A stretch of 64,000 bases of DNA from Lepidodermella squamata (GCA_047495785.1 JBLDXI010000045.1:744001-808000), one strand, 5' to 3'. Positions 4,610 through 64,000 are shown, counted from the stretch's first letter. The notes: a model not told the origin generated them from the sequence alone. Translations and numbers: made by a program.

Positions 4610-6701
4610 ATGTCCGATCCGCAGGCTAATGATTCCGATGGAGGCGAAGATCCAGCGCCAGTGGCACAGACTAAAACACGGACTAAAGTAACAAAATCCG
4701 TGCCGAAACCGGAGGAAGCTAGCAACCTGAAAGGTTTCCTATTTGCCTTCACTCTCAAGTTTTTCCTCCGTTCAAGTGCAAGAGAAGTCATCGATTGCTT
4801 AGTTAACGGTCAAGATTCTCGACTCGCTGAGGTCTTATTTCAATTTCCATTGGGGAAAAATCTTAAAACGACTGATGAATTATAGCTTTTAGATGACAGC
4901 CTAGCGAAGGATTACTGCCTTACCGAGTGCGAACACTACCACATTACCCCATACCATTCCATCGGTAAAATTCAAGTTTAAGCATAGATGGAAGTCGATC
5001 AACTGTAATTTATAGCCTTCGTCAAATGTGACATTGACCTGGCTTCATCTCTGCTCAAAATCGGTATCAACGTCGACGAGCCGGTGAAGGAGAAAACCTT
5101 GGCTTGGGACATGGCCGTAGAACCAGGCAGCCGATTGCTGCATCTGGCAGCTATGACAGGTCACGTCAAATTGATTAACATCCTTATCGAAATGGGAGCT
5201 GATCCGAACGCTCAAGTAAGGACAATATTTTAGCCCGAGTCGATGCATTTCCGTAAATTTCAGGCTGAGAATGGATCTACCCCTTTGTTTGTTGCCTGCA
5301 GCCAAGGACAGGCTGAGGCTGCGGCTGCTTTGATTGAGGGCGGGGCTGACATGAACTATCGCCGACTCAGTGATAATGGAACGCTTCTTCATGCTGCTGG
5401 TAATAATTGTTTAAAAAATGAACAAAATCTAGTATTGCTTTCGAATTTAAAGCGGACTTCGGATCTGATCAGACCTGCGCTCGGTTACTGGAAAAAGGCG
5501 CTGATGTGTCTGCAATAAATAACTGTGGTCACTCCCGTTTGTTCTCAATTTTGATAAAAGTTAACATTGAATCTATCTCAATTTCGAATAGCACTCCACG
5601 TTGCTGCGAAACGAGGATATATCAAAATTGCCGAATTGCTCATCAAATATCTCGCTGACGTCGATCAAGTCAACAAATACCATCAGGAAACTGCTCTACA
5701 CAAGGTAAATCTAGAATTTGGTCAGCCGATTTCAATAAGGTTTCCTGCTCTCAGGCTTGTCAATATGGGCAAACAGAAACGGCAATTTGCCTACTCGGCT
5801 ATGGTGCAGCGATCAACGCGATAAACCGATTTGGCTTTACCCCGTTGATGAAAGCTGTCGAACGTGGCCACGGTGATACAACGGAAATGTTACTAGCACG
5901 CAACGCTGCCGTCAACACTTCGGCGACAGGTAGACAATGGGCAGGCCAATCGCCCCTGCATCTGGCTGTAGCCGCTAAACGCTCAGATATTTTGTACATG
6001 TTGCTGGAAAAACATGCCGAAGTTGATAAGCAGGATGCTCATCAGGTAATGTTAGTCCTACGCTTGAGTTGTATTCTACTTGGAATGATTCCCAGCGAAC
6101 TCCACTATTTTTGGCCGTTCAACTCGGAGCTGTCGAGCCGGCCTCGTTGCTTTCGAGATACGGAGCATCGGTAAATACGGTCGATCGGGACGGAAACACT
6201 CCTATGCATATTGCAGCGCATGAGAACAACACGGATATCCTAAATTTACTCCTGGATCGAAATGCCAGAATTGCAGCACGCAACGTCCAAGGGTAACAAA
6301 CCAAAATAATAAATTCAAATATTTGTTAAACTAAAATCCGCGCCAAATGATACCAAAATTTATCTTAATTAATTAAGGCTACGTCAGATTTTTGGGGTTT
6401 TGAGCATAGAAATTGATAGGAAAATTTCTGCGAATTTTATAAATGATCGAAAGTTCTACAAATTATTTCAAGTTAGGTTCCGTTGAAATTTACGACCATG
6501 GCTTATATTCCATGTTTTTCTTATTCCAGTCGAACGCCTCTTCACATGGCTGTGGCAAACAATGCAACCGAGGCTGTTATTCTGTTGCTGGGAAACTTGG
6601 CCCGACCCGATATTCGTGACAGTGATGGCCATACGTGCTACGATTTAGCCTCGCCACAAATGCGAGCCGCCATTGCAAGAAACTCTAGCATGCATCGCTG
6701 A
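4610..6701 (+). CDS. Multi-exon ankyrin-repeat protein
   Basis: Ankyrin motifs across many short exons: GSTPLFVAC, ALHVAAKRG, GFTPLMKAVERG, GQSPLHLAV, RTPLFLAV, GNTPMHIAA, RTPLHMAV. Exact 5' exon joins not fully resolved. Confidence 0.88.
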
Positions 6702-14668: not shown

Positions 14669-15956
14669 CTAAGCCTTAGGAGCAGCCTGCGTTGGCGTTG
14701 TGGCCAACGTGTGTTGCGGCAGTTCGTGCAGCGGCGTTTCGTAGGGCGCCGGAAGAACGGCATCGCTCGGCTCCACGCCCCAGATGTCACGGGCGTACTC
14801 GCGGATCGTGCGGTCGCTCGAAAACTTGCCAGAAGCGGCAATATTCAACAGCGCCTTGCGGTGCCAAGCGCGTTGATCCTAAAACGAAAAAAAAAAGAAA
14901 ATCAACTCAGAATTAAAGAAAATTCAAATATTGTGAGGAAAAATTTAGAAAAAATAGATTAATTTTCCTATTAAGGGGGATTTTCCGATGCAGTGAAAAC
15001 TGGGCTAGCCGGACTAAGATAGCGGCACATAATAACTTCCGGCTTAGTGCAAATCCGGAGTCCGGTCTGAAGGGACCGCCGGACGAGCGAAAGCCTCTGA
15101 AAGATCCTCTAAGAAATTCCGGTTTAGACGTCCTCGGCTTTACGAAACTTTCACTGCATTTGAGTTCAGTTAAACCAGTTCTTGGAATTTTTAAAGTTAT
15201 TTCCCGAAAAATATGCTAATATCTAACTATGCTTTTGGTGAATTCTTCAAGTTTCAGACACAATTCAAGATACGGCGCGGATTTTCGGAAAATTCGGTAG
15301 TAGGACTTACCATGTAGAGCTTAGCGACTTCCTCCTGAGCCTTGATGTAAGCATCAAAGTCAGCCATAAGACAGAAGCGGTCGTGGTTAAGCAAGTTGTC
15401 AGCCAGCGGCGTGAACAAGTTCGGATCCTCGGGCGAGAAGAAGCCGGTGCGCAGCTGGTCGATGGCGAGGCGCAGCTCGGGGTTGCGCTCGTAGTACTGG
15501 CGCGGGTTGTAGCCCTGGCGGTGCAGAGCCTCAACGTCCTCGACCGTCATGCCGAAGATGAACATGTTCTCGCGGCCGGCCTCCTCCATCATCTCGACAT
15601 TGGCGCCGTCGAGCGTGCCAATGGTCAGCGCGCCGTTCAACATGAACTTCATGTTACCGGTGCCGGACGCCTCAGTGCCAGCCAGGGAGATTTGCTCCGA
15701 CAAATCCGCCGCCGGGATGATCTTCTCAGCCATGGTGACACGGTAGTTGGGCAAGAACACCAAGCGCAGACGCGTGCCAACAATCGGATCCGTGTTGATC
15801 ACGGCGCCGACGTTGCTGATCAGCTTGATGATCAGACGGGCAATGTGGTAGCCCGGAGCTGCCTTGCCGCCGATGAGCACGGTTCGCGGGACCATGTGCA
15901 GCGACGGGTTGCGGCGAATTCGGTTGTACAGCACAATGACGTGCAGCACGTTCAAC

Positions 15957-15993
<37 letters not shown>

Positions 15994-18900
15994 TGTCGAA
16001 GATCGACGCCGGGTCGATGGTGACGCCGCACTGGCGGGCGACCATCTCAGCGAGTTGCGTCTTGTTGTCCAGCTTAATTCGCGCGATAGCCGCGATGATC
16101 TGGTCGTCGTTGACCGAGTTGCGCAGCTGCGCGAGTTCGGACAGGTTAGTCACCCAGCCCGGGCCGATGTTGTTCGAGATGAGGTCGGCGAGCGCGTAGT
16201 TGCACAGCAACAGCCAGCGGCGGGGCGTGATGCCGTTCGTCTTGTTCTGGAACTTCTGCGGCCACAGCTCGTAGAAGTCGCGGAACAGGTCCGCCTTCAA
16301 GATTTCCGAGTGGATCTGCGCGACTCCGTTGACGGCGTGCGAGCCAACGACGGCGAGCAGGGCCATGTTAACGCGCTTGTGCGGCCACTCTTCGATGAGC
16401 GACATGCGGCCGAGGCGGTCGTTGTCGCCCGGCCAGCGCAGCGCGACTTCGGCGAGGTGGCGCGAGTTGATTTCGTAGATGATCTGGAGGTGGCGCGGCA
16501 GGAGACGCTCGAACATCTCGACCGGCCAGCGCTCGAGCGCCTCCGGCAACACCGTGTGGTTGGTGTAGGCGCAGGCGCCGCACGTCACCTTCCACGCGTC
16601 CTCCCAGACCAGGCCTTCGATATCAACGAGCAGACGCATGAGCTCGGAGATGGCGAGCGCCGGGTGGGTGTCGTTAAGCTGGATGGCGACCTTCTCCGGG
16701 AACGACGAGAAGCTGGTGCGGGACGGCGCGCGTTCGCCGTACTTGACGGTCTTGAAGCGGCGCATCACGTCCTGGAGGGTGGCTGCGACGAGGAAGTACT
16801 CCTGGCGCAGACGCAGCTCCTTGCCCTCGAAGAAGTTGTCGTTCGGGTAGAGGACTCGCGAGATGTTCTCGGCCTGGAAGCGATCGCACACGGCCTGCAC
16901 GTACTCGCCCGAGTTGAAGAACTTGAGGTTGAAAGCCACCGGGGCTCGGGCGGCCCACAGGCGCAGCGTGTTCACCGTGTTGTTGCGGTAGCCTGGCACG
17001 GGCGTGTCGTAAGGCATCGCGAACACGATCTGCGTGTCGACCCAGCGACGGCGGTCGCTGCCAGGCACGATCTCGACGCGTCCGTAGAAGTTCACCGGTA
17101 TCATGTACTCAGGACGCGGCTGCTCCCACGGGTTGCCGTAGCGCAACCAATCATCCGGGTCTTCTCTCTATAAATAGCAAAAGCAAGAAAAATCACAATT
17201 AATATTCGGCACTAATTTTCAGTGCAATTGTATCGATTTTTTTCTGCTGAAATTAGGTCAAAAAGACTAACCTGCCAGCCGTTCTCGAGACGCTGCGTGA
17301 AAATACCATAATCGTAACGGATACCGTAGCCGTAAGCCGCAAGACCGACAGTTGACATCGAGTCCAAAAAGCAGGCAGCGAGACGGCCGAGACCGCCGTT
17401 GCCCAAGCCGGCGTCTTCCTCGGCCTCGGCAAGTTCTTCCATGTCAAGACCCAGCTGAATAGGGGAACATTATTAGAACAAGGCCATTGAAACATCACAC
17501 ACAGCGACAATCAATGCGCTGAATTCAGGGCCCTTTTTAATGTGAGTGTGAATTTTTCGGACACGCCCGGCCCCGCATATTGGAACATACCTGTACATGT
17601 AAATCGGCATTCAGCCTGGCTTCTTAATAGTAGCGCGACCGGTGCAGTTTTAGAATAAATGCTCGGCCGGAGACGAAGATTAAGTGGTAGCATTAAGGTG
17701 GAGATTAAGAAAGTGTCGACGATATAAGGTGTTAACAATATAATAAGAAGCAAGTGTCCTACGCGCGTAGTTCGTCCGCCCGATGATAGTAATAAGCTAG
17801 TAGAAGTAGTTAGGCTAATTCTTGGATATAAAAATATACCGCACAACTCACACAGTTCATCATTAAGAAAAGAAAAATCGACTGAAACTGAAAACTGAAA
17901 ATAGCCTGAATGCTATGTGCCCTGAACCTTATCCTATATATACAGCAACTCGCTCAACTGTACAACAATGAAAGGCTCTGATATCATCATCATCATCATC
18001 AATATATCATGATCAAGAAGAATTTTCAAGGCGCGACGACGGTCAAATTAGAGTGACTTATTGTACCGAACTAGTTGGTCTTACGTCATTTAGAAGTAGC
18101 GATGATGATTAGGTGTAGAAATCGCGCGTTGAATTCGACTGATATGTGTAACAAAAAATCGAATTCGAAAAATTGAAGAAACTAGATTCATTTGTTAAAT
18201 TTGTAAAATGAACTAATTGACCGCGAGCGTTAAGATTTGAAGCTGAGTTCAAGTGTTCAAAGAGGAGATGATGACTGAGGTAGGTCGATCGAATCACGTG
18301 GTAACATCTCGAGCCGAACTCGTCAGTTGTAACGATGGATGGCGGCGCTCTTTCTCGCATGGTCCTGGTGATGTGTTGGTGGTAACAAAATTAACACGAG
18401 CAGACACCAGTTAATCTGCTCGCGGACCATCGCAAAATTAATAAGTGTGCTAGATAGGTAACAGGTAGAGGTAACAGAGTAACAAGGGAAACATCGAATC
18501 GTTTCGAAGATCAAGGCAAGATTCGCCGAAGTTTTGAGAAAATGTTAAGGGCGTTCTGTAAAAATTTGAAACTGAAAAATGTTTCGAGCAAGAGCGCGAA
18601 CGCGCGCGATAATATATATTGATATACGCGAGCGATATATATTTTTTATTTAAACATATAACAATAATACGGAGCCGCAGAAATAAGACTGGCGATGACT
18701 GTAATAAAATATAGCCTCTCTGATATATAACTAACACGCATCACGTGTAAGAGAAGCCGCCCGAGCTGCTTGCTCGGTGCAATCGCCGATGCACCGGGCG
18801 CAGCAGAATGTGCGCGCGCGTAAAAGAACGACGTCGCGCCACAGCCGTCGTTTCTCGCTCGCTCGCGCGCATTCGCATTCGCTCTCACTTTATACTGCAT

Positions 18901-53032: not shown

Positions 53033-56000
53033 CTAGATTGGCGGTGGGCCTTGCTGGTACGTGAGCATAAGGGTCAGCGATCGGCGTAGGTTGTTCTGAA
53101 GTTCGCACGGCTCGTCACCAGGGCACAGTTGCGGCAGTAGCCAGTGCATCAGCGCCAAAATGGCTATGGTCGATGTTAGAATAGCCACTGGCAGGATGAC
53201 GAGCAACCGGCGCACCCTCGGCGATAGTGAAGATGTAGATTCAGATGGTGATGATGATGACGAGGCGGCGCCGCCCTTTTTCGAGTCATCGCCGGTCGAC
53301 TTTTTCAGAGGCAGCGGTGACTGCTCCTTCTTGGCCGGTCCGCTAGCACCACTCTGGCCGGCAGGTTTTTCACTCGACGTTTGTTTACCCTTGCGTTGGC
53401 GAGGCGACGGCGGCTGATTCGGCGGCTCTTCAGCCGTCAGCGACGCAGCTGCTAACGAAATCGACTGCTCTTCTTTGGTGTCAATCGTAAGACTTTCGGG
53501 CGCAGCTTTTTCGACCTCAGCAGTGGCTGCTTCAGCAGTTGCTTCTTCGATGTGAGCGGCTGGTGGCGATACGCTCATCGTTTCTTCGTGGCTTTCCTGA
53601 GCAGTTGGCGTCGCAACTTGGGCGGTTTTCGAGCCTTTCTGCTGGCCCTTTTTGTTGCCGAATGGATCTTTCATCCGCAGGGCCTTCTTAGCCTTATTCG
53701 CCCCTTTGCCGCCACCGCGTCTCCGTTCGCCATCTTTCTTGTTCTCAACATCGCTGTTTTCGTCTTGAGGCTGCAATTAAATAAATATTAAATTAAATTA
53801 AATTAAATTAAATAATATTTGTATATTTAATTGATTAATTTAATTCGATTAAAATTAAATAATTTATAATTAAATTAATTAAAATTGGAATTTAATTAAA
53901 ATTTAATTTAATTAAAACTAGAATACTCACCTTATCTTCTGAGGTTGAACCGCCGGTCATTTCGATACTGTCGGTCATAACCGATGGAATCGACTGGGCC
54001 GCTTTTTCAAGTTGGCGTTGTTGCTGCTCGGCCATTTTCAAGCGAACCGCCTCAACTGCCTTGGCGATATCGCCAGCTAATGCATCGATATCACCTAGCA
54101 ATTGCGCGAGTTTCTCGTGTCTAGGGCTGCCAGGCTTCAGATCACCCATCAACCGGGCGACTTGCTGCCGGCAAGCAGCAACGTCCGACTCGAGACGGCA
54201 CCAATCGACTAGCAATTTAGCCAGATCGGTTTCGTCGCTCGTCGCCAGTTGGTTGAACAACCGTTTAGCCGCTTCGAATTTCTGACAAATTTCGGCGAGA
54301 GTTGACTCAAAAGCAGCGCGTTCTTTCGCTGCCGATGATTGCAGGCCGGACAGTTCGCCGAGTTTACGAACGCAGACCCCGGACAACCGGCGGCATTCCG
54401 CTAACGCCTCGGATAACTCGGAAATCGGGTCGTTTTTCGGCGCGGGAGGTGACGATTTTTTACCTTTACCGCCCTTATTTTTGCCAGCCTGTTGTTTCGG
54501 CGCTGGCTTCTTTGGTGGTTGCTTTGAGGCGAGATTTGAAATTTCGCCGTTTTGACTCGCTAGAATATCATCCAATTTCGCGATTTCAGGCGTCAATTCA
54601 TTGTCGATCCGATCTCGTGATTTTTCGAAAATCGCATCGTCAATATTCAAAGCAGGCTGGCTCAATTGCTTTGTCAGCTGGTCAATTTCAGTCTTGACAG
54701 AATTCAACCGATTTTTCGCGTCTGAAAGAGCCGATCGGCTGCTTTCAATCGCCTGTTGGTTGGCGATTTCATCCCGAGTCGATTGTTGGTACTCGGCCAA
54801 CTGTCGGTGAAGAGCGTCGATTTGCTTCTGTTTATCTCGAAGATTTTCGGCGAAAATCGACGAAACTGAAGACGGGGTAGACCAGCGTGACGACTCGGTG
54901 TCGCTGATCAAATTTTCCATATCCTCAGCCAGTTGCAGGCCTGACCTCAAAATAGTGTCACAGCGTGTTAGAGCCGCCTCATTCGCAGGCTCCGTCTCAA
55001 AAATCGTCGCAGCCTCGCGAAGAAGGGCGTCAACTCGAACCGTCAGATCCGCGACACGAGATTTGACAACTTCTTGCCGTTCGCGGTCTGAAACGTTGAA
55101 TTCCGCATTTTGAAGATCGTCGCGCAATTTCGTAATTTTCTGCTGTTGAATCGCGCTTAGCAACGAGCTGAGTAGCGCGTGCTGCTCATCGATTGGCACG
55201 TTTTCTAGGCTGGGCGAAATTATGGCATCTTCGTTGGCAAAACAGCCCGAGTCGTTCAGGGTGAATAGTCCCAACTCGCAAGAACGTTCGTTGACGACAT
55301 CCAATTTTCTTCGCAATTTATCCAACGGTGTTTTCTCGTTCGATTTCAGCAAGTCATCTAAAGCCGCGTAGATTTCAACAATTTTCGAGTCGAATGGCTG
55401 CGATTTTTCCTGCAGAAATTTAACAGCATTCAACGCAGCGTCCAGATGGCTCATTTCAACGTCGAGTTTCGCGAAAATCGCCGTCGCCTGTTCGTCATCT
55501 TCGGTGCTCAAAGCATCGACGCGGCTTGTCAAATCAGCGAGTTGATCGCGCTGGTTGCTTAGCAACGACGCGACGCTAGCCAAAGCAGACTGGCAATCTC
55601 CGCTTTCGACGGACATATTTTCTGGGATCGAACTCGCCCGCTCTTGTTGCTGCTCGACCAGCGTTTTCTCGAGTTGCTGCGAGATGAATTCGTAAAATTG
55701 CGTCAAGTCTGATTTTTTCACATCAGGCTCAGGTGATGTTTGAGTCGCGCCCTCAACAACGGGTTGAGATTGCGTTGAATCGTGGCTTGGAACTGCCAAC
55801 ATTTCGACCTGACAGTCCAAGTCCAAACTTTCAACCACGTTCTCCTGCTGCTTTTGTACAAGAGACTCGATTTCGAGGTTCAACGTCGGCTCGGGGGTTG
55901 TTTGAGTCTCGCCGTGATTCAACGACAGTGAAATAGCCGCTTGGCAATCGGCATCTTGACCGAGGCCAGGGCTCATAGTTGTACCCTGGTCGCTGGTCGG

Positions 56001-59000
56001 CTCATCCTCCCGACCGACGCAAATCGTCATCTGGTCGACAGCGGCCTGCGAACTCGAGTCGTTGAGATTAATCGGCGGCAACGGGGATGTCCCACTGGTT
56101 TTCGTCCTCAACAGCCCTTTCGTAGATGTTTGCTTATCCTCACCCGAAATCGTTAGATCCGACCCGGTAGAGACGGTCGCCGAGCGGCAAACTGCGTTAA
56201 CCCCGGTTTCGGTAATAACCGGGTTCGCTGATTGAGTCGATGAGTCGAACGTTTCAACAGGTGGTTGAGGGCTGGTCGATTGTTCGTTCGTATCAACCTG
56301 CAGCGTTGCCGTTGACTGTTCGATGGTCATTATCAGATCATCGCTGTCGACCTCAACGCTAACCGAGCTACAAACCGCGTTGACCCCGATTTCAGACATC
56401 GGCAACGGGCTGGATTGGACAGCCGAGTCGAGCAGGGCGGGTGAAGCGACAGGGCTGGTGTGTCTCTCCGATGTTTCAACCCTCAGCGTCGCTGTTGATT
56501 GTTCACTAGTCTGGACTAAATTATCGCTACCAACACTCGCGTCTGAAGATTGACAAATCGCTGAGACTGCGGCTTCACTGCTGGATGAAAACGAAACTCC
56601 AGCTTGAGATAGCCGATTTCTAGTTTTCAGCTTATCAGTCTGAGTTTGGCACTCGCCAACCGCGACGGATGATTGGCTGTTTTGATCGAGGGTCGACAGC
56701 CGCATCGGGCTGGTTGAAATCTCCCGGCTTTCACCCGGCATCGGCAGGTCGCCGCCGACTGAAATCGACGCAATTTCCACCCCGGTTTGAGACGAAATGC
56801 TGAAATTTTCTGGCGGCGGAATTGGTGAACAGCCAGAGTCAGATGTCGGGATAACAATCGGGACAGTCTCGACCCCAACTTCGCTAGATGCAACAACAAT
56901 TGGCGAGCAACCAGTTTCAGAGGTTTCAACAGTTGGAATTGCAGCTGTTTCAATTCCGATCTCGCTGGATTGAATAGGAATAGGCGATGAGCCGGTTTCT
57001 GAGGTTTCGATTTTCACAACAGGTATCGTTTCAACCGCAGCATCACTTGATTTAACTTTTTCCTCAGGAATAGGCGAGCAGCCACTTTCAGAAGTAGAAA
57101 TCTTAGTTTCGACCGCAATGTCGGCGGATGAAATTAAACTGGTTTGAATGGGCGAGGAGCCTGTTTCTGTGGTTTCTGCTTTCGCCATAGTTTCAATGCC
57201 GATCTCACTCGTAGAAGCACTTGGAGTTGGCGATGAACCCCGCTCAATTGTTGTAACTTCAATTTTCAACAACGAGTCATCTTTCATAGTTTCAACACCG
57301 ATTTCATTTGAAGAAACGTGAACAGGTGAGCAACCTGAGTCAGTCGTGGCGACTTTAAGCGACGCTGAAGTTTCAACCCCAACATCGGCAGATTTCACCA
57401 ACTCGGGCGATGTTGTTGAATCGCGCAGTTCTGCAATCGACTTATCACACCCTGATAGCGTAGTGGCGAAAGAAACTGCATCGAACTGACTCGATGAATC
57501 AGCTGATTTCGGCTGAGGGGCTGGGCTCGTACTGCGATTTTCCACAACAGGAGCCATAGTCGACGTGGTTTTGTCGTCATTCGCAACGGAGGCACCAATC
57601 GATTGGTCATGGCGATGCGACCACGATGGCCCAGTTTGGTTATTGGCGTCCAGACCCAACACCGGCTGGGTTTGCGAGTCAATCTCAGCAAAATCCACCT
57701 TAACGCCCTGGCTCTCCGTGCTGACCATCAACGGCTGGCAGGTGGCCGTCGACTTCGAATCAACAGATTGCGGAACGGTTGAAATCGATCGATTCTTCGT
57801 TTTTTGAATCGCACTAACCGCCGCGTCTTGCAACTCCGCAACCCCGGTGCCGGCTTGAAGGCTGACAGTTAGCAACGCAGGGCTTCGAGTCTGGGTCTCG
57901 GTATCGTTGCCAGGCTGTTTCGAAGTTTGAGAGGCGGCGACGTTTTGCCCGGGTTGATCCGTGGATGTGACTTGATTCAGAAAATCGCGAACAGCGCTAA
58001 CGCCAGCATCGACCTGGTTACCGAAGGGCGAGCCGATTTGACACTCTTTCGACCGAGTCTCGCCGCTACTAGTCGCCGGGAATTTAATCGGGGCGACGTA
58101 CTCCTGCGGGGCTGGGTCGCGGGGGTGGATAACAACCGGTTCTTCCCGTTGTTGTTTCCTATGCGGTTTCGGGTAGCGATGGGTGCGTGTGACTTCAGGC
58201 GGCTGTTGTTCCGGCGAAGAAGTCGTCATAGCGGCTTGTTCAGCCGAGTGGAAAGACCGGGGCGACGGCGTGGTCGGCGGGTGCGAAAACGACGAGACAG
58301 TCGAGCTGGACGCGCTCGAATCTCGCCGCTTCGTACTCAACGACATGGCAGAATCGTCGTCGTTAATCAGCACCGTGAGGGGTTCAGTTTGACTGGTCGC
58401 ATCACCGCCGCGGATCAGGTCGTCTGTGCTAACTAAAGCGTCGGCGAAAACCAGGCTCTGGTTAGACGATAAGTCCCAACTAGCACCGCAATCGACGCCG
58501 ACACTCGCCGTTTCCGACGTGTCGGTCTGCGCACCCAAATCGCGGCACAGCCACGCTTGAAAACTGGCGGCGTCCAGCTGTTCGTCACGCATGGCCGTTG
58601 ACGCCGTGTTCGTCGACCGCTCGCGCCGTTTCGGCGGCGAGATGGTCGAACTCGAGGCTGTTGAAAGCGCGTCGTCGTCGCTAGGCGGCGATAACGAGGC
58701 CGCGGCGACACTACGTGACGAAACAGCCTCGGTTGGTTTTTGCACGGGTTTATTGAATGAAATAGTCGATTTTTTGGTCAGTTGAGCAGTGTCCAGCGTG
58801 TTAAGCCGGCTGTCGTCCAACGACGCTAGCGACGATGGCGCCGAGTCGTTGCGCGACAACGCCACCGCCGCATTCTCCGCCGCCTGTTGCATCTGCTGAA
58901 GAGCCGGCGATTCCGGGATCGACGACAACCGGTGTTGCTTGTTAAGGCGGACGGGCAGCGATCGGCGAATTTGGCTGTTATTCGCATCCTGCGACGACGT

Positions 59001-62000
59001 GGTCGATTGCTGGCCGACCCTTAGCACAATGTTATGCGGCGACGCCTTCTTTTCATCGTCGTCGTCGAAACCGGGTGGGGGTGGGGGTAGAACTACGACG
59101 AAATCGCCGGTTGCCGGCAATTTCACCGTCGCAGCGGCTTTCGAGTTCGGCCCAACGTCGACCCGCAGCGCAGTCGACGGTTGAACCTTAACAGCCGTTG
59201 TCATGAGTGGTTGCTGTTCCTCTCCTTTTTCGTCCTTTTTCGTCTGCTGTTGAATATGCGGTGCAGAAGTTGCTAATTGTGTCGTGCAGATAGATAATTC
59301 GGGAGTAGTAGTAGCATCGGGTAAAAGCTGGTTATTGTTACTAGTAGTAGTAGTACTGCTATTGACGGATTTATCCTCGTCAGGTAATGCCGAATCGCTA
59401 TATATCAGCACAGTCGATTGCGGAGGCGCGATACTTTCCGCCGATTCCTCTTTTTCAACAAGCGACTGGCACGACTCGGTCTTCTCTAATACAGATTGCT
59501 GTAAAAAGAAACACAGAAAAAATTATGAAAAAATTGTAGAAAAATATTTGCGAAATGGTTTTAGTGGGAAAAAGGGCAAGGTCGAAACCAAAAGCGTTTT
59601 TAATATTGTTGTAAAAAGACTCTGGGGTTATTTCGATTAAAAATCTGCGTTATATCGTCAGTTAATTCTGGCGTGACCTACTAATGCCAGCAATTACTTT
59701 TACAATATTTACAACTCGGGATGATTGTTTGCTTGTTTGTTTGGTATATTTCCGTTACGCGTCACGAACCCAACACCTGTGAAGTGTGCAATTATGTGTT
59801 GTACACATGACAACGCCTTTCCGTCGCGATGAAAGCAGTGCGTGCGACTCAACAACATACATGAACTAGGTATAACACCGGCGACGGTAACTCCTCACAA
59901 CAGTACAAAACCAAAACGTCAAAGGTGCCGGTGATAATGAAAGGCGGTGGTGAATCGCCGTGGTGGTGGTGGTGCCCAAACAGCGCGTGGTTGTTGGTAA
60001 TAGCGTGTCGTTAAGTGCCCAGAAAATGGCGTGCATCGTGATGAGATCGAGCTATTAAGATGAGATATATCATGTCACAGTTTTAGGTACGATCGCGACA
60101 CGTAAAAATGATAAGGAAGAATTCGTGAATCATAGCGAGACTTGAAACATTATCAACTTTTTTAAGGCGAACTCGACTGCTGATGGCGAGATGGGAAGTT
60201 CCCAGACTTGTCTAAATTAATCGAATAGCATGCAGAAGAGAGAGAAGAGATATTATATTAATAAAATTGGCTGCTTATTTTTTGGCAAAATTGTGCGTTA
60301 TTGCAATAAAAATTAGAAAATTGTGCAAAATTGTGCGAATGTTATTAAATTATTTTTTCAGATTATTCGTGATTTTTCAAGCAGCTCTAGCTTGCCGCGT
60401 GATGTTATACGGTTATAAAGATGTATTTACTCCGAATAAATAAGGACTGGATGGCGATGCGAGAGAGATCCTAAGCTGCAAGCTCGCCATAGGCGTCTGT
60501 TTAAAATCCAAAAAATCCAGCTTAATTTTTGAAGAAATTACTATAAATTTCAAGTGATTTTTTTGTGAAGCAGCCAATTTTTGTTGATGATGACGGATGA
60601 GCTTAATAATATAAGGAGGCAGGTGAGAAATACGAAAAGGAAGACTGGACAATAAATATAGCGTAAAAAGAGACCTGATCTCAACTGTTTCAAGGTGATA
60701 GCTATGTTAAATTTGTTAAATAATTATTTAGATAGCGATAGCAGCTAATATGTTGATTATTGTTGAGATTATTAGAGGCTTTTTGTGAAACAACTTTTTT
60801 CGAATCTACTAACGGGGTAGATTTCTGCCACGTCCGACGCGATTGCAACAGTCTGTTCTGTTGCCTAAAGCACGGCGATGGCTCGCGATACGGGTGCAGC
60901 ATGTACTCGTGGCACGTCGTGTATTGCTGTTGATAGCGACAGGAGTACGACGACGACGACGACCCGGTGGGCATCGGCCTCGCTGCAGGCGGCAGCACGG
61001 TGTTAACGTTGAACAAAATTCTGGGCCTGTAGCCTTCACCGACCTGATTTCATACACAAGTCACACGGCCCATTATCAATCAATCAATATCAAAGAAAAT
61101 TTTTGGCAAAAAATTCAACTACAACTGGTTATTCAAAGAAACCCTACTCGAAATTATTACAACGCCAAGTTCCATATAGTAAAGTTCAGGTGATCAAATT
61201 TGTATACAGCAGTGTGAGATGTTCATTAAAGTAAATTGATTACATAATTTCATTAAATCAACTACAGTTAAATTGTGAAATTTAAGAGATAGAAAAGAAA
61301 GATCACTACTTGATAGACGGTGCAATGACGTGGTGCTCTTCTACACTGTTAACAGTTCGGATATTTAATTTTTTATAAGAAAATGACTTTAGGGGTAACA
61401 CTTGGAAATAAGGGATTTTTTTTAGTAGGAAATGAACTAAAATTGTCTTGTTAGGGGAGCGGCTTGGATTAATTTTTACCTCGTTCGAACTCTTGCTGCG
61501 CGAAAGTCCAGAATCTCCCGGATTGTAATGCGGAGGCTCCTAAAAATTCAATAAAAATTTCAAAAATTCCCATTTTTCTAGCGACTAACAGGTCTCCTTA
61601 TAGGTTCAGGTGCTGGTCTTGGTCTGTGATAAACAACGTATTCCTCGTAAGTTGTACGATCGCTGGCTGACGAGCTCTGAAAATAACCGAAATATAATTG
61701 ATACGAAACGGCTGAACTGTAACAAACCGATGAAGGTTTCTTCTTAAGCTTTTCGCCATATTTATCGCCATATTTATCGCCCGATGTAGACATCACAACC
61801 ATCTGAAGAGAAAATAAGAATGCATAATTTAGCTCAAGTCGGCAGGCAAATACCGAAAATAAATAGAACAGAAGAGGTTCCACTAATAACTAATAAAATA
61901 ACGATCCAGTTTCACAAGGCGGGCATGCCGAGTTCATTCTACTGTGAATGGTTCCCATAATAAGTAGTTGTGTTATTGACGATAAACAAAATGATATATA

Positions 62001-64000
62001 AAAACACGGTTTCCAATCACATGGAATGCGGTTATTCATGAAGACGAAGTGAAAAATACGTGCATAGTCATTAATTATCGTGCGATTATAAAAATATCAG
62101 CAGCGTAAACCAAAGTCAACAAAATAATTGTCTACCCATATAATTAGGCAGATGACAAAACCACAGCGTCGCAAGTGCGATAAACCTACATTACGCTCGA
62201 CAGGAGCACTCGATTGAGGAGCCGTCTCTATTACCGGCTCTTTCACCGAGCCCGAACTGCTGCCGTCGCCGCCAGGTTGTGGCAACGGCTCTTCAGCGTC
62301 GGGCTTTTTCTTCATTAAGGAATGGAACGATAGCTATGCGATTGGTAAATATAAATAATCATAATGTATGACTATCTGATCGACTAATACAGGATATAAT
62401 AAACACATTTGCATTCTCAATGACGGCGCTCGACGAATAGGAGTGATTTTTAGGGTGTAAATATGTAAATTAGGGTGTCGATATTTGGGAAACATACCTT
62501 TACGTTGCCGTAATGAGTTTCGAAGGCTGATCGCAAGCTTGGAGCGAAACGCCATTTAGCGTCTGAAAGCTGCTTCAAAAGCCAGTCAGCTTGACGGTAA
62601 GCCAACTGAAGTCGCCATGAAGCGTGGTTCTACAATTAAAATATAAAAATAATTAAACAAGCTAAAATTTCACACCCAAAGAGAAAGATTTGTTCTAGGG
62701 CTAATTTTGAAGAGAAAATAAATTCAATTTTCGGGATTTAATGGGGAGTTATTCCGACGTGCAAAAATAAAATGCGATTGTTCTTGAGTTCAAGCGGTTA
62801 AAAAATCCTTAACCGAATTTACCTCGACTTATCATGATTATAAAAAGGTGGAATATCCGATTTTCTGAATAAAGACCAATATTTATAACCCCAATATTTT
62901 CGCAACTACCAAGGCGGGGATATTTTTTAATTTAATCAGAAATTACCTGGAATTTATCGAAATCGCTATCAGCATAAGGCACCAGTTCTGTGGTGCAGTT
63001 ATCCAAGTCTTGCAAAACGTCCTTCAAAGCCGACAACGCGAATTTAGCCACAACACTCGAATACTCGAGATCAGAGATGCGGCCCATCGCGTTGTCGATG
63101 GTCGCGAGCGACGACGGGCGGGCCTGGCGCGAAGCACCCAGCTCCGGGTCGAACGTTCGTTTAATCTTATCCAGCAAATAATCAATCTCAACCCGCAGAT
63201 TACGCCGAGTTGCCGAGGTCGCCAAACCAAGCGGTCGCAGGTCGAGCGTAGTCGAGCGGATCCGTTCAACGCAGACAAGGCGCTGCGCGAAATTTTCACT
63301 TTCACGCAACTCAGCCGCTCGGCGATTCGCGTCCTGCTTCGCCGTTGAAACGCCGCTGGCGAGGCGAGACGACAACTGCCGGCTGTCGACGACAATCCAG
63401 CCGAAACGAGCGGCTAGAACTTCAGCCTCAACGAACAGCTTATCACGATGCGTTCGGCTGTCGGTCTTGAAGTAATCGCGGCATTGCTGCGACAACAAAT
63501 CAGCGTTTTTCGCGATGTCATTCGCTTCGATTTGCAGCGTTTCAAGCTGTTCGTCCGGCGAAAGAGTTGTCACGGGCGTTGTTGGCGGGGTCGCCATCAC
63601 CCGGTCGACAACTGACCGCAGTTTCCTCAACCGTTCGTTCAACTGCTGCTCAGCGCTGACGAAGTGACTCCACGCGGTGGCGTAGTCATTTCGCCGGTTT
63701 TTCTGCGACTCCAGCGACTTCTGAACATTCGCGATAGCTTGAAGAGCTGAATTCAGCTGATCACGATATTCAGCCCCGGATGGGTCGTTGCCGGAGTTCA
63801 GCTGATAAGCCAGGCTTTTCAGGCCATCGATCGCCTCAGACATCTGCGAGTCGAACTCTTTATCATGCAAGCAGCACTCATCAGATAGACACAAATGAGG
63901 CTTTGAAGCTGAATTCGTGATGTCAAGCAGGCGAACTAAGAAACTGGCGAACGATCGAACCGCCTCGCCGGAAGACTGGACCAAATTGTTCTGCAATTCC
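53033..64000 (-). CDS. Giant KASH-domain protein (nesprin-like), 3' portion; 5' end lies beyond the window
   Basis: C-terminal TM helix plus luminal CELQNNLRRSLTLMLTYQQGPPPI*. Helical, spectrin-repeat-like segments at 62946-64000 and about 54000-55700. A phase-0 chain of small exons (61.5-62.6 kb) joins a 5568-nt exon (53931-59498) and the last exon (53033-53770). Confidence 0.9.
53775..53916. repeat. Extremely AT-rich (TAAAT)n-like low-complexity intron
   Basis: About 140 nt of almost pure A/T with a taaattaaattaaattaaat run, between the giant exon and the KASH exon. Confidence 0.85.
60702..61043 (-). CDS. Candidate alternative terminal exon of the KASH gene
   Basis: CAG acceptor (AG at 61044-61045) in phase 0, matching the upstream donor near 61480, followed by 113 open codons and a stop. 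Confidence 0.4.
   Translation of the reverse strand, partial: VGEGYRPRILFNVNTVLPPAARPMPTGSSSSSYSCRYQQQYTTCHEYMLHPYREPSPCFRQQNRLLQSRRTWQKSTPLVDSKKVVSQKASNNLNNNQHISCYRYLNNYLTNLT

Follow-up and report, generated by a model that had tools for sequence, protein, structure and literature searches.

Introduction

The dynein light chain LC8 recognizes an eight-residue motif with preferences that extend into its flanks, for which a published compilation lists 79 validated binders and 32 non-binders that contain the anchor (PMC6607443, Table S4). Multivalent LC8 clients, among them ASCIZ/ATMIN (7 sites in Drosophila, 11 in human), Nup159, Chica/FAM83D, and bassoon, carry TQT motifs in a disordered region. 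We describe here a 64,000-nucleotide stretch of DNA from Lepidodermella squamata (GCA_047495785.1, JBLDXI010000045.1:744001-808000), referred to as the window and numbered from its first letter, and within it a nesprin-like gene whose giant coding exon encodes a linker rich in serine and threonine ahead of the KASH exon. A preliminary description of the window had read this linker as a single array of LC8-binding motifs. The reading we favor, with modest confidence, is of a fast-evolving acidic disordered linker of a nesprin-like KASH protein, with few LC8-type sites and a separate, lineage-specific bipartite repeat.

The L2 linker of KANK1 binds at least 15 LC8 dimers, as seen by isothermal titration calorimetry, size-exclusion chromatography with multi-angle light scattering, and electron microscopy. 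Its anchors are non-canonical (IGC, VNT, VMA, TST, TNT, VGE) and lie 11-18 residues apart; none of its sites passes LC8Pred, isolated peptides bind more weakly than 60 uM, and the rods are about 50 nm long (bioRxiv 10.1101/2025.07.16.665182). Position 0 of LC8 clients can also be N, M, S, or even G (PMC12057147). The C. elegans KASH protein UNC-83, located in the outer nuclear membrane, has a domain that binds DLC-1/LC8, and also binds NUD-2 and BICD-1 (PMC2953438). In view of KANK1 and UNC-83, two expectations of the preliminary description need correction, namely that the L. squamata array would exceed the known multivalent LC8 partners and that no such module is known in a LINC-complex protein. 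A literature search returned no paper linking nesprin, DYNLL1, and TQT, and a looser search combining Msp300, 'cut up', and LC8 listed none mentioning Msp300.

The L. squamata linker resembles ASCIZ/ATMIN in being a disordered, S/T/Q-rich region with several octamers of the form [D/S]-x-x-T-Q-T, and one of these, NDTETQTR, is nearly identical to SDTETQTE and NSTETQTM of ATMIN and to RDIETQTP of dASCIZ (PMC6607443, Table S4). It differs in spacing, as sites in ASCIZ-type clients lie about 20-35 residues apart (by the Q positions in Table S4), whereas those of the linker lie 12-164 residues apart, with four TQT in 940 residues. It also belongs to a membrane-anchored KASH protein, whereas clients of the ASCIZ/Nup159 type are a transcription factor or a nucleoporin, and its sites are candidates. 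Like KANK1 L2, it is long and disordered, belongs to an adaptor that couples to the cytoskeleton, and carries many short beta-prone motifs that fail LC8 scoring; in KANK1, LC8 does turn such a floppy linker into a rod. With UNC-83, whose cytoplasmic part has a DLC-1-binding domain, it shares membership in the KASH proteins. The protein has the long helical segments, the C-terminal transmembrane segment, and the KASH domain ending in PPPx of Nesprin, Msp300, and ANC-1. It departs from these in that its Spectrin_Anc-1 match falls below the Pfam threshold and that homologues were detected by sequence in a single related species.

Three motif classes in an acidic linker

The linker is encoded within one exon.

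53931..59498, minus strand: giant coding exon, with splice signals read directly, an open frame, and phase 0 at both ends
55728..58550, minus strand: acidic S/T/V/P-rich linker (exon residues 317-1257, 941 residues), probably disordered

The linker lies between spectrin-like upstream exons and the helical segment that precedes the KASH exon. Serine and threonine make up 28% of its residues, and D plus E are well above K plus R. Pfam has no match on the giant exon, nor on the two open reading frames of the orthologue introduced below. AlphaFold2 (AF2), run on exon residues 680-1150 as a single sequence without an alignment, returned a mean predicted local distance difference test score (pLDDT) of 32, with every residue below 50, which is consistent with disorder and lends no support to a solenoid. 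Every motif string quoted in the preliminary description is present in the region.

Motif counts were compared with those in 5000 composition-matched shuffles of the 941-residue linker. TQT occurs 4 times against a shuffle mean of 0.70 (P 0.006), [ST]Q[ST] 11 times against 4.6 (P 0.004), and TSP 7 times against 1.24 (P 0.0002). Two further patterns, G[CS]SP (7 observed, shuffle mean 0.11) and [IV]G[IV][EN][TA] (6 observed, shuffle mean 0.01), reach their observed counts in none of the 5000 shuffles. The motifs of the linker are far from random, yet they form three classes rather than one family: QT-type octamers, motif A, and motif B. Nor is the region the single array of about 900 residues that had been proposed, as it is inhomogeneous and consists of an eight-unit core, looser units of about 62 residues, and scattered QT sites. 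The QT dipeptide is enriched (14 against 6.6) and TQ is not. A reading as a cluster of ATM/ATR-type SQ/TQ sites was rejected, since [ST]Q shows no enrichment (17 against 16.7).

Scoring of glutamine-anchored octamers

Octamers were scored with a position-specific scoring matrix (PSSM), a plain log-odds matrix from hand-tallied per-position counts of the 79 LC8Pred binders, each column of which sums to 79. Sequences sampled from the binder columns have a median score of 16.2 and a 10th percentile of 11.4. Sites of the QT type have the form [D/E/S]-x-x-[T/S/A/V]-Q-T and are as follows.

57885..57908, minus strand: QT site 1, NDTETQTR (exon residues 531-538), PSSM 16.0, close to the binder median of 16.2 and the best
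56634..56657, minus strand: QT site GECQTQTD (exon residues 948-955), PSSM 13.2
55896..55919, minus strand: QT site NHGETQTT (exon residues 1194-1201), PSSM 13.0, about 60 residues before the helical segment
55734..55757, minus strand: QT site VEGATQTS (exon residues 1248-1255), PSSM 11.1, directly before the helical segment
58521..58544, minus strand: weak QT-type site RDLGAQTD (exon residues 319-326), PSSM 10.0
58383-58406, minus strand: weak QT-type site GDATSQTE, PSSM between about 4 and 11
57921-57944, minus strand: weak QT-type site NVAASQTS, PSSM between about 4 and 11
57666-57689, minus strand: weak QT-type site AEIDSQTQ, PSSM between about 4 and 11
57630-57653, minus strand: weak QT-type site LDANNQTG, PSSM between about 4 and 11, paired with SDQSFQTG of the orthologue
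56781-56804, minus strand: weak QT-type site FSISSQTG, PSSM 11.0
56505-56528, minus strand: weak QT-type site SDNLVQTS, PSSM between about 4 and 11

Three octamers score in the range typical of binders, 11.4 or more (16.0, 13.2, and 13.0), and a fourth, at 11.1, falls just short of it. The last two TQT sites fall in a stretch of low AF2 confidence just preceding the predicted helices, and they are internal duplicates of each other (GETQTTPEP and GATQTSPEP). Across exon residues 1170-1257 (55728-55989) there are three copies of G-x-T-[MQ]-[ST]-x-P, namely GTTMSPG and the two just given, where the orthologue has one, GTSMSPT; the trio is a local duplication with a change from M-S to Q-T or the reverse.

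Five octamers score 10 or more, against 0.79 in shuffles (P 0.001), and three score 13 or more, against 0.18 (P 0.0005). The density of hits in the linker does exceed that in composition-matched shuffles, a comparison that the preliminary description had called for, and the enrichment is unchanged when shuffling is confined to blocks of 50 residues. Reversing the linker provides a control that preserves composition, clustering, and the palindromic TQT. In the reversed linker one octamer scores 8 or more, against 8 in the forward direction, one scores 10 or more, against 5 forward, and one scores 13 or more. Reversal gives far fewer high-scoring octamers, and the QT sites thus have flanks that resemble those of LC8 sites when read in the forward direction. 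Around the 14 QT dipeptides the flanks score above those of random positions (P 0.001; P 0.009 with position -1 left out), and in 11 of the 14 position -4, where binders favor D or S, is occupied by D, E, S, or H. A pattern fixed a priori, [DESTNH]..[TSVI]Q[TV], has 9 matches against 2.1 in shuffles (P 0.0002), and a post hoc pattern, [DESH]xx[TSVIAN]QT, has 11 against 1.04. An ELM-style pattern with K or R at -3, [^P].[KR].TQT, has no match in the linker.

The predicted sites present the features by which LC8 clients are recognized, an anchored octamer with compatible flanks in a disordered region. Of the motif classes that had been grouped together as LC8-like, the QT type is upheld by the PSSM and the reversed control, whereas the TSP and EIGVET classes reach PSSM scores of about 3-5. 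With the latter two left out, the dozens of sites that had been proposed shrink to roughly 4-11 candidates over 940 residues, that is, four strong TQT sites, or up to eleven with the weak ones included. The QT-type sites are irregularly spaced (12-164 residues apart) and mostly outside the tandem core. Clients that form rods have many sites at a uniform spacing of roughly 11-35 residues. Sites with an LC8 anchor do not show this spacing in the linker; it appears only if motifs A and B are counted as LC8 sites as well.

Comparison with an orthologous gene

Homology searches used single exons as queries. Word searches with the giant exon, whether whole or restricted to its helical part, found no homologue, nor did an exhaustive HMMER search of 1.84 billion representatives with exon residues 660-1856, and the giant exon had no homologue in the ESM Atlas or in JGI metagenome contigs. 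With the KASH exon as query, a single protein emerged, P0001, whose KASH part is 80% identical. The contigs on which P0001 is encoded (L001-L004), from ENA metagenome assemblies, carry an orthologous gene that is collinear by tblastx and whose exon begins at the same QSVLEKTES acceptor as the giant exon. The spectrin-like exon is 52-62% identical to that of the orthologue and the helical part 23%. The counterpart of the linker is about 500 residues long and about 20% identical, with short conserved islands only; these stand in the same order in both species and read VVLPPPPPGF, RNDSAPxSLAxLD, HPPTTPSPR, [TI]SSP[ED], and D[AS]GV[SN]A. At L002 7942-8006 the counterpart of the giant exon, which is continuous in the window, is broken by a gap of about 60 nucleotides (...ttatttattag/GTACTGG) that looks like a short intron.

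One TQT site is conserved in position. The orthologue's only TQT, in EDNATQTI, is also its best PSSM match (11.3) and aligns with NDTETQTR, and each of the two lies 37-38 residues after the D[AS]GV[SN]A landmark. All four QT dipeptides of the orthologue have D or E at -4. Enrichment by PSSM is weaker than in L. squamata, with 4 octamers at 8 or more against 0.9 in shuffles (P 0.01) and none at 13 or more.

Several points weigh against reading the QT-type octamers as LC8 sites. The PSSM simplifies LC8Pred, as it is built without that method's non-binder information and its volume and polarity matrices, and the acidic residue at -4, as in [DE]xxxQT, was noticed only after the data had been viewed. 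Some of the 32 anchor-containing non-binders in Table S4 are akin to sites of the linker (GDTDTQTS, EETETQTC, DQCSTQTD). The aligner may have been drawn to the TQT triplet that NDTETQTR and EDNATQTI share. Conservation of TQT is judged from one orthologue and for two of the four sites, and one of these, VEGATQTS (in EGATQTSPE), aligns with ECGTSMSPT, where TQT is not kept. LDANNQTG aligns with SDQSFQTG, and position -1 of this pair (N/F) is not LC8-like; the conserved D-x-x-x-Q-T pair might serve a reader other than LC8.

The linker may even have nothing to do with LC8, an alternative we hold to be possible and on the whole unlikely. It would then be an entropic spacer with phosphorylation sites and docking sites for other partners, and its QT enrichment would stem from a different reader or from a common origin of cryptic repeats. 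The -1 residues of LDANNQTG and SDQSFQTG fit such a view, as does the failure of many TQT peptides to bind LC8 (PMC6607443), and the duplication of GETQTTPEP and GATQTSPEP means that the TQT counts are not fully independent. The dipeptide SP is enriched in the linker (21 against 11.2 in shuffles, P 0.001) and TP is not; [STCMI]SP is enriched in the orthologue too (7 against 1.0), with xSP thus enriched in both species. Several of these fall in strings of the type S-P-x-[KR], the pattern of cyclin-dependent kinase sites, with ISTSPMR in the linker and MSPTR, TSPYR, and SSPTK in the orthologue. What an LC8-free linker can hardly explain is that the QT flanks are LC8-like in a direction-specific way (D/E/S at -4, D/E/S/T at +2), and that NDTETQTR, conserved in position, matches the ASCIZ/ATMIN binders SDTETQTE and NSTETQTM almost residue for residue. 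We keep to the reading in which a small number of QT-type octamers are candidate LC8 sites.

A bipartite repeat of lineage-specific extent

The remaining two motif classes, A and B, make up a repeat.

56727..57425, minus strand: eight tandem units of 26-39 residues (exon residues 692-924), from unit alignment
56088..56726, minus strand: three to four further units, looser and longer at about 62 residues each (exon residues 925-1137), from the motif map and sequence

The unit consensus consists of motif A, S-E-[ST]-G-[CS]-S-P-I, motif B, S-S-E-I-G-V-E-T, and a tail, K-[IV]-E-T. Strict A-B-A-B alternation is confined to exon residues 692-924, with 10-13 residues from A to B and 13-22 from B to A. 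This alternation in the eight-unit core is the source of the rhythm of one motif every 11-15 residues that the preliminary description had extended over much of the linker; it holds in the core and is lost elsewhere, where the QT sites are irregular. The looser units follow the pattern xTSP ... [SE][IA][GA]V[SN]A[VI] ... EQSTATL[RQ]V[ED]T.

Units are 54% identical to one another at the nucleotide level, and where residues are identical the codon is the same in 43% of pairs. Tandem Repeats Finder (TRF) detects no DNA-level tandem repeat in the giant exon, the repeat being visible at the protein level only, and a BLAST self-comparison of the exon did not list the internal repeats, which were mapped instead by motif anchoring. 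Since DNA identity is this low, codons have diverged, and TRF finds no repeat, the units must be old, their G-[CS]-S-P-I and S-S-E-I-G-V-E-T cores kept by selection at the protein level.

Neither motif scores as a canonical LC8 site. Full PSSM scores of A and B are about 3-5, against the binder 10th percentile of 11.4, and the tandem core holds a single octamer at 8 or more. Position 0 is Q in 74 of the 79 binders and E in none of them, whereas E occupies it in all seven core B motifs and in the variant eighth (GVEI), encoded by GAA or GAG; Q is one base change away, yet E was retained while neighboring codons diverged. Scored without position 0, the seven core B motifs reach 3.3-9.0, which places them at the 95th-99.5th percentile of the region's octamers, and three of them are at or within 0.1 of the corresponding binder 10th percentile of 7.5. 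The form of motif B, x-[ED]-[IVA]-[GA]-[IV]-E-T-x, is like that of validated binders of the GIQV/GIQT class (NNIGIQTM, LSIGIQVD) except for E in place of Q. The N-terminal flanks of the A motifs score 1.6-4.7, against a binder median of 4.3. Motif A resembles RDVATSPI of PAK1, crystallized with LC8 (PDB 3DVP), in its acidic residue at -4, beta-branched residue at -3, small residue at -2, S-P at 0/+1, and I at +2. The two differ at -1, where PAK1 has T and motif A has C or S, and the PAK1 site is single, atypical, and not in the LC8Pred training set.

The orthologue is without the eightfold array and has about two A/B units (DRASSPIQIA...AMETIP...QEIGSDPISPVETLDMGVQVNKETDTE). One B element of the orthologue, LDMGVQVN, is a canonical octamer of the GVQV type, like the validated binder ISTGVQVN.

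In a reading along the lines of the preliminary description, the A, B, and QT motifs would all bind LC8 cooperatively and zip two chains into a beads-on-a-string rod at the outer nuclear membrane, with phosphorylation at SP as a possible switch. We consider such a dense array doubtful. Failure under a TQT matrix does not by itself exclude LC8 binding by a dense array, because KANK1 L2 provides a precedent, with its 15 or more dimers on non-canonical anchors 11-18 residues apart. The centers of the A and B motifs lie 10-22 residues apart, and the IGC and VGE anchors of KANK1 resemble IGV/GVE of motif B. The binder-like N-terminal flanks of motif A and its resemblance to PAK1, the high scores of motif B outside position 0, the LDMGVQVN element of the orthologue, the record of S and G at position 0 in LC8 clients, and the occurrence of genuine-looking TQT sites within the same linker all speak for it. 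Against it stand the invariable E at position 0 of motif B, found in no binder although Q is one base away, the low full scores of both motifs, and the lack of conservation, with about two units in the orthologue. The [CS]-S-P anchor has one precedent, PAK1, and that site is reportedly weak. Compared with KANK1, moreover, the likeness of A and B is one of sequence, E is conserved at the canonical position 0, and the array is species-specific. In a fully KANK1-like form, which we also find improbable, the 16 motifs of the A/B units and the QT sites would load some 16-25 LC8 dimers to give a hinged rod at the outer nuclear membrane, its length tuned between species by copy number (about 2 against 8) and an S-P phosphoswitch acting on it. 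Rather than canonical LC8 sites, motifs A and B more probably represent sites of proline-directed phosphorylation combined with a short beta-strand docking element.

A self-folding, beta-rich domain, whether a solenoid or immunoglobulin-like, is very improbable as an account of the tandem repeat. Although V, I, and T abound in the core and hydropathy there is near neutral, unit length varies from 26 to 39 residues, with indels between motifs, and proline and serine are abundant. The low-confidence AF2 model does draw short strands at the B motifs; the same model, run without an alignment, has the pLDDT of 32 given above and no residue over 50. The orthologue makes do with about two units, and neither Pfam nor the Atlas has a match.

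Exon structure and the KASH anchor

The giant exon is 5568 nucleotides long and comprises 1856 codons without a stop, read on the minus strand from 59498 to 53931. Its acceptor is cag/CAATCT at 59499/59498 and its donor AAG/gtgagt at 53931/53930. The segments that follow it or lie within it are listed here.

53771..53930, minus strand: intron from giant exon to KASH exon, 160 nucleotides, TTAAT-rich, gtgagt...ttgcag, with its junction seen in an RNA contig
53033..53770, minus strand: last exon, 245 residues and stop, with a basic low-complexity stretch, a transmembrane helix, and the KASH domain
53931..55727, minus strand: helical segment of about 600 residues (exon residues 1258-1856), AF2 helices, between linker and KASH exon
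59067..59096, minus strand: conserved island VVLPPPPPGF (exon residues 135-144), identical in the orthologue (L002 about 6323-6364)
exon residue 216 onward, minus strand: conserved island RNDSAPxSLAxLD, present in the orthologue in the same order
58257..58283, minus strand: conserved island HPPTTPSPR (exon residues 406-414), identical in the orthologue and in the same order

The last exon contains a KASH domain by Pfam model PF10541 (41.6 bits against a cut-off of 23, E=1.5e-10) at its residues 200-245, window 53036-53173, and the protein ends in ...LTYQQGPPPI. The exon aligns with the nesprin-1/-3 KASH peptides of the SUN-KASH crystal structures 6wme, 6r15, and 4dxr. With a transmembrane helix and a short luminal C-terminus of the PPPx type, the protein has the hallmarks of a KASH protein of the LINC complex. 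A 5568-nucleotide exon ahead of a KASH anchor had been described before, and its exact length, its splice signals, and the PF10541 match confirm it; the S/T-rich part, placed in that description between helical regions and the KASH anchor, is itself followed by the helical segment before the KASH exon.

An upstream open reading frame on the same strand (window 62932-63996) matches Spectrin_Anc-1 with E 0.008, and the orthologue does so with E 0.041, both below the Pfam cut-off. AF2, run on exon residues 1180-1855 as a single sequence, predicts long helices from about residue 1261 on, with pLDDT 70-89 over much of the length. The alignment of this helical segment to the orthologue, 23% identical, has an E value of 7e-16. 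Foldseek on the helical segment returned weak helical-bundle and spectrin-like rows, none significant.

The public run X1 shows the giant exon spliced to the KASH exon as predicted, in a 704-nucleotide contig that covers 53499-53770 and then 53931-54365. The run is treated as RNA because of this intron-less contig, its RNA status being otherwise a tool's guess. Contigs of X1 span the giant exon from 53931 to about 57990, more sparsely toward the 5' side, with none over 58000-58599, so the presence of the exon in KASH transcripts holds for its 3' two thirds, which the contigs cover. Among the X1 contig joints listed, no skipping joint falls within the giant exon. The outcomes that the preliminary description had named as telling against it came out otherwise where they were examined, with motif scores above shuffles, no confident fold, and the exon joined to the KASH exon in RNA. 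Of 31 listed differences between X1 and the window, 22 are synonymous and 9 non-synonymous, which argues that the frame of the giant exon is under purifying selection. Low-depth X1 contigs over window 55688-58903 show many 'opposite strands' joints about 100-120 nucleotides apart, which look like assembly or library fold-back artefacts rather than biology. The last intron consists almost wholly of AT-rich microsatellite of the TTAAT/ATTAA type (TRF periods 4-16).

The islands RNDSAPxSLAxLD and HPPTTPSPR lie in the N-terminal, disordered portion of the giant exon. In VVLPPPPPGF, the run L-P-P-P-P resembles a proline motif of the Ena/VASP EVH1 or profilin type; if that likeness is true, the island would be a docking site for an actin regulator on a KASH protein.

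Outside this gene, the window is a compact animal locus with genes for glycogen phosphorylase, Cep192, SART-1, SKIP, and UDP-glucose dehydrogenase. Opposite the glycogen phosphorylase exon (15254-17146, minus strand, Pfam E 1e-269) there is a 596-codon open frame at 15383-17173 on the plus strand that has no Pfam match and probably arises from the codon bias of this GC-rich exon.

Discussion

LC8 binding by the TQT sites, and its consequence for the protein, we infer from the octamers and their flanks. Each LC8 dimer would engage two parallel chains, one motif on each. The result would be a clamp, an in-register dimer with local stiffening of the linker ahead of the helical rod, rather than a continuous rod. 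Other LC8 clients, with TQT sites beside coiled coils, offer a precedent for such a clamp. The A/B units would be a separate matter, an eightfold lineage-specific expansion in which both motifs are under selection without a glutamine anchor.

Should LC8 not bind these sites, what remains is an ordinary disordered linker that evolves fast and carries phosphosites. In the A/B repeat, nature offers a clean example of a short-motif array that has grown in one lineage under selection, and a ready test of how far the non-canonical, KANK1-type repertoire of LC8 reaches; were the array to prove KANK1-like, E, S, or G at position 0 would be established as usable LC8 anchors. If the TQT sites do bind, this would be a nesprin-like protein whose dimerization or stiffness is set by LC8, extending the precedent of UNC-83 and DLC-1, and such a protein would bear on force transmission through the LINC complex and on nuclear positioning.

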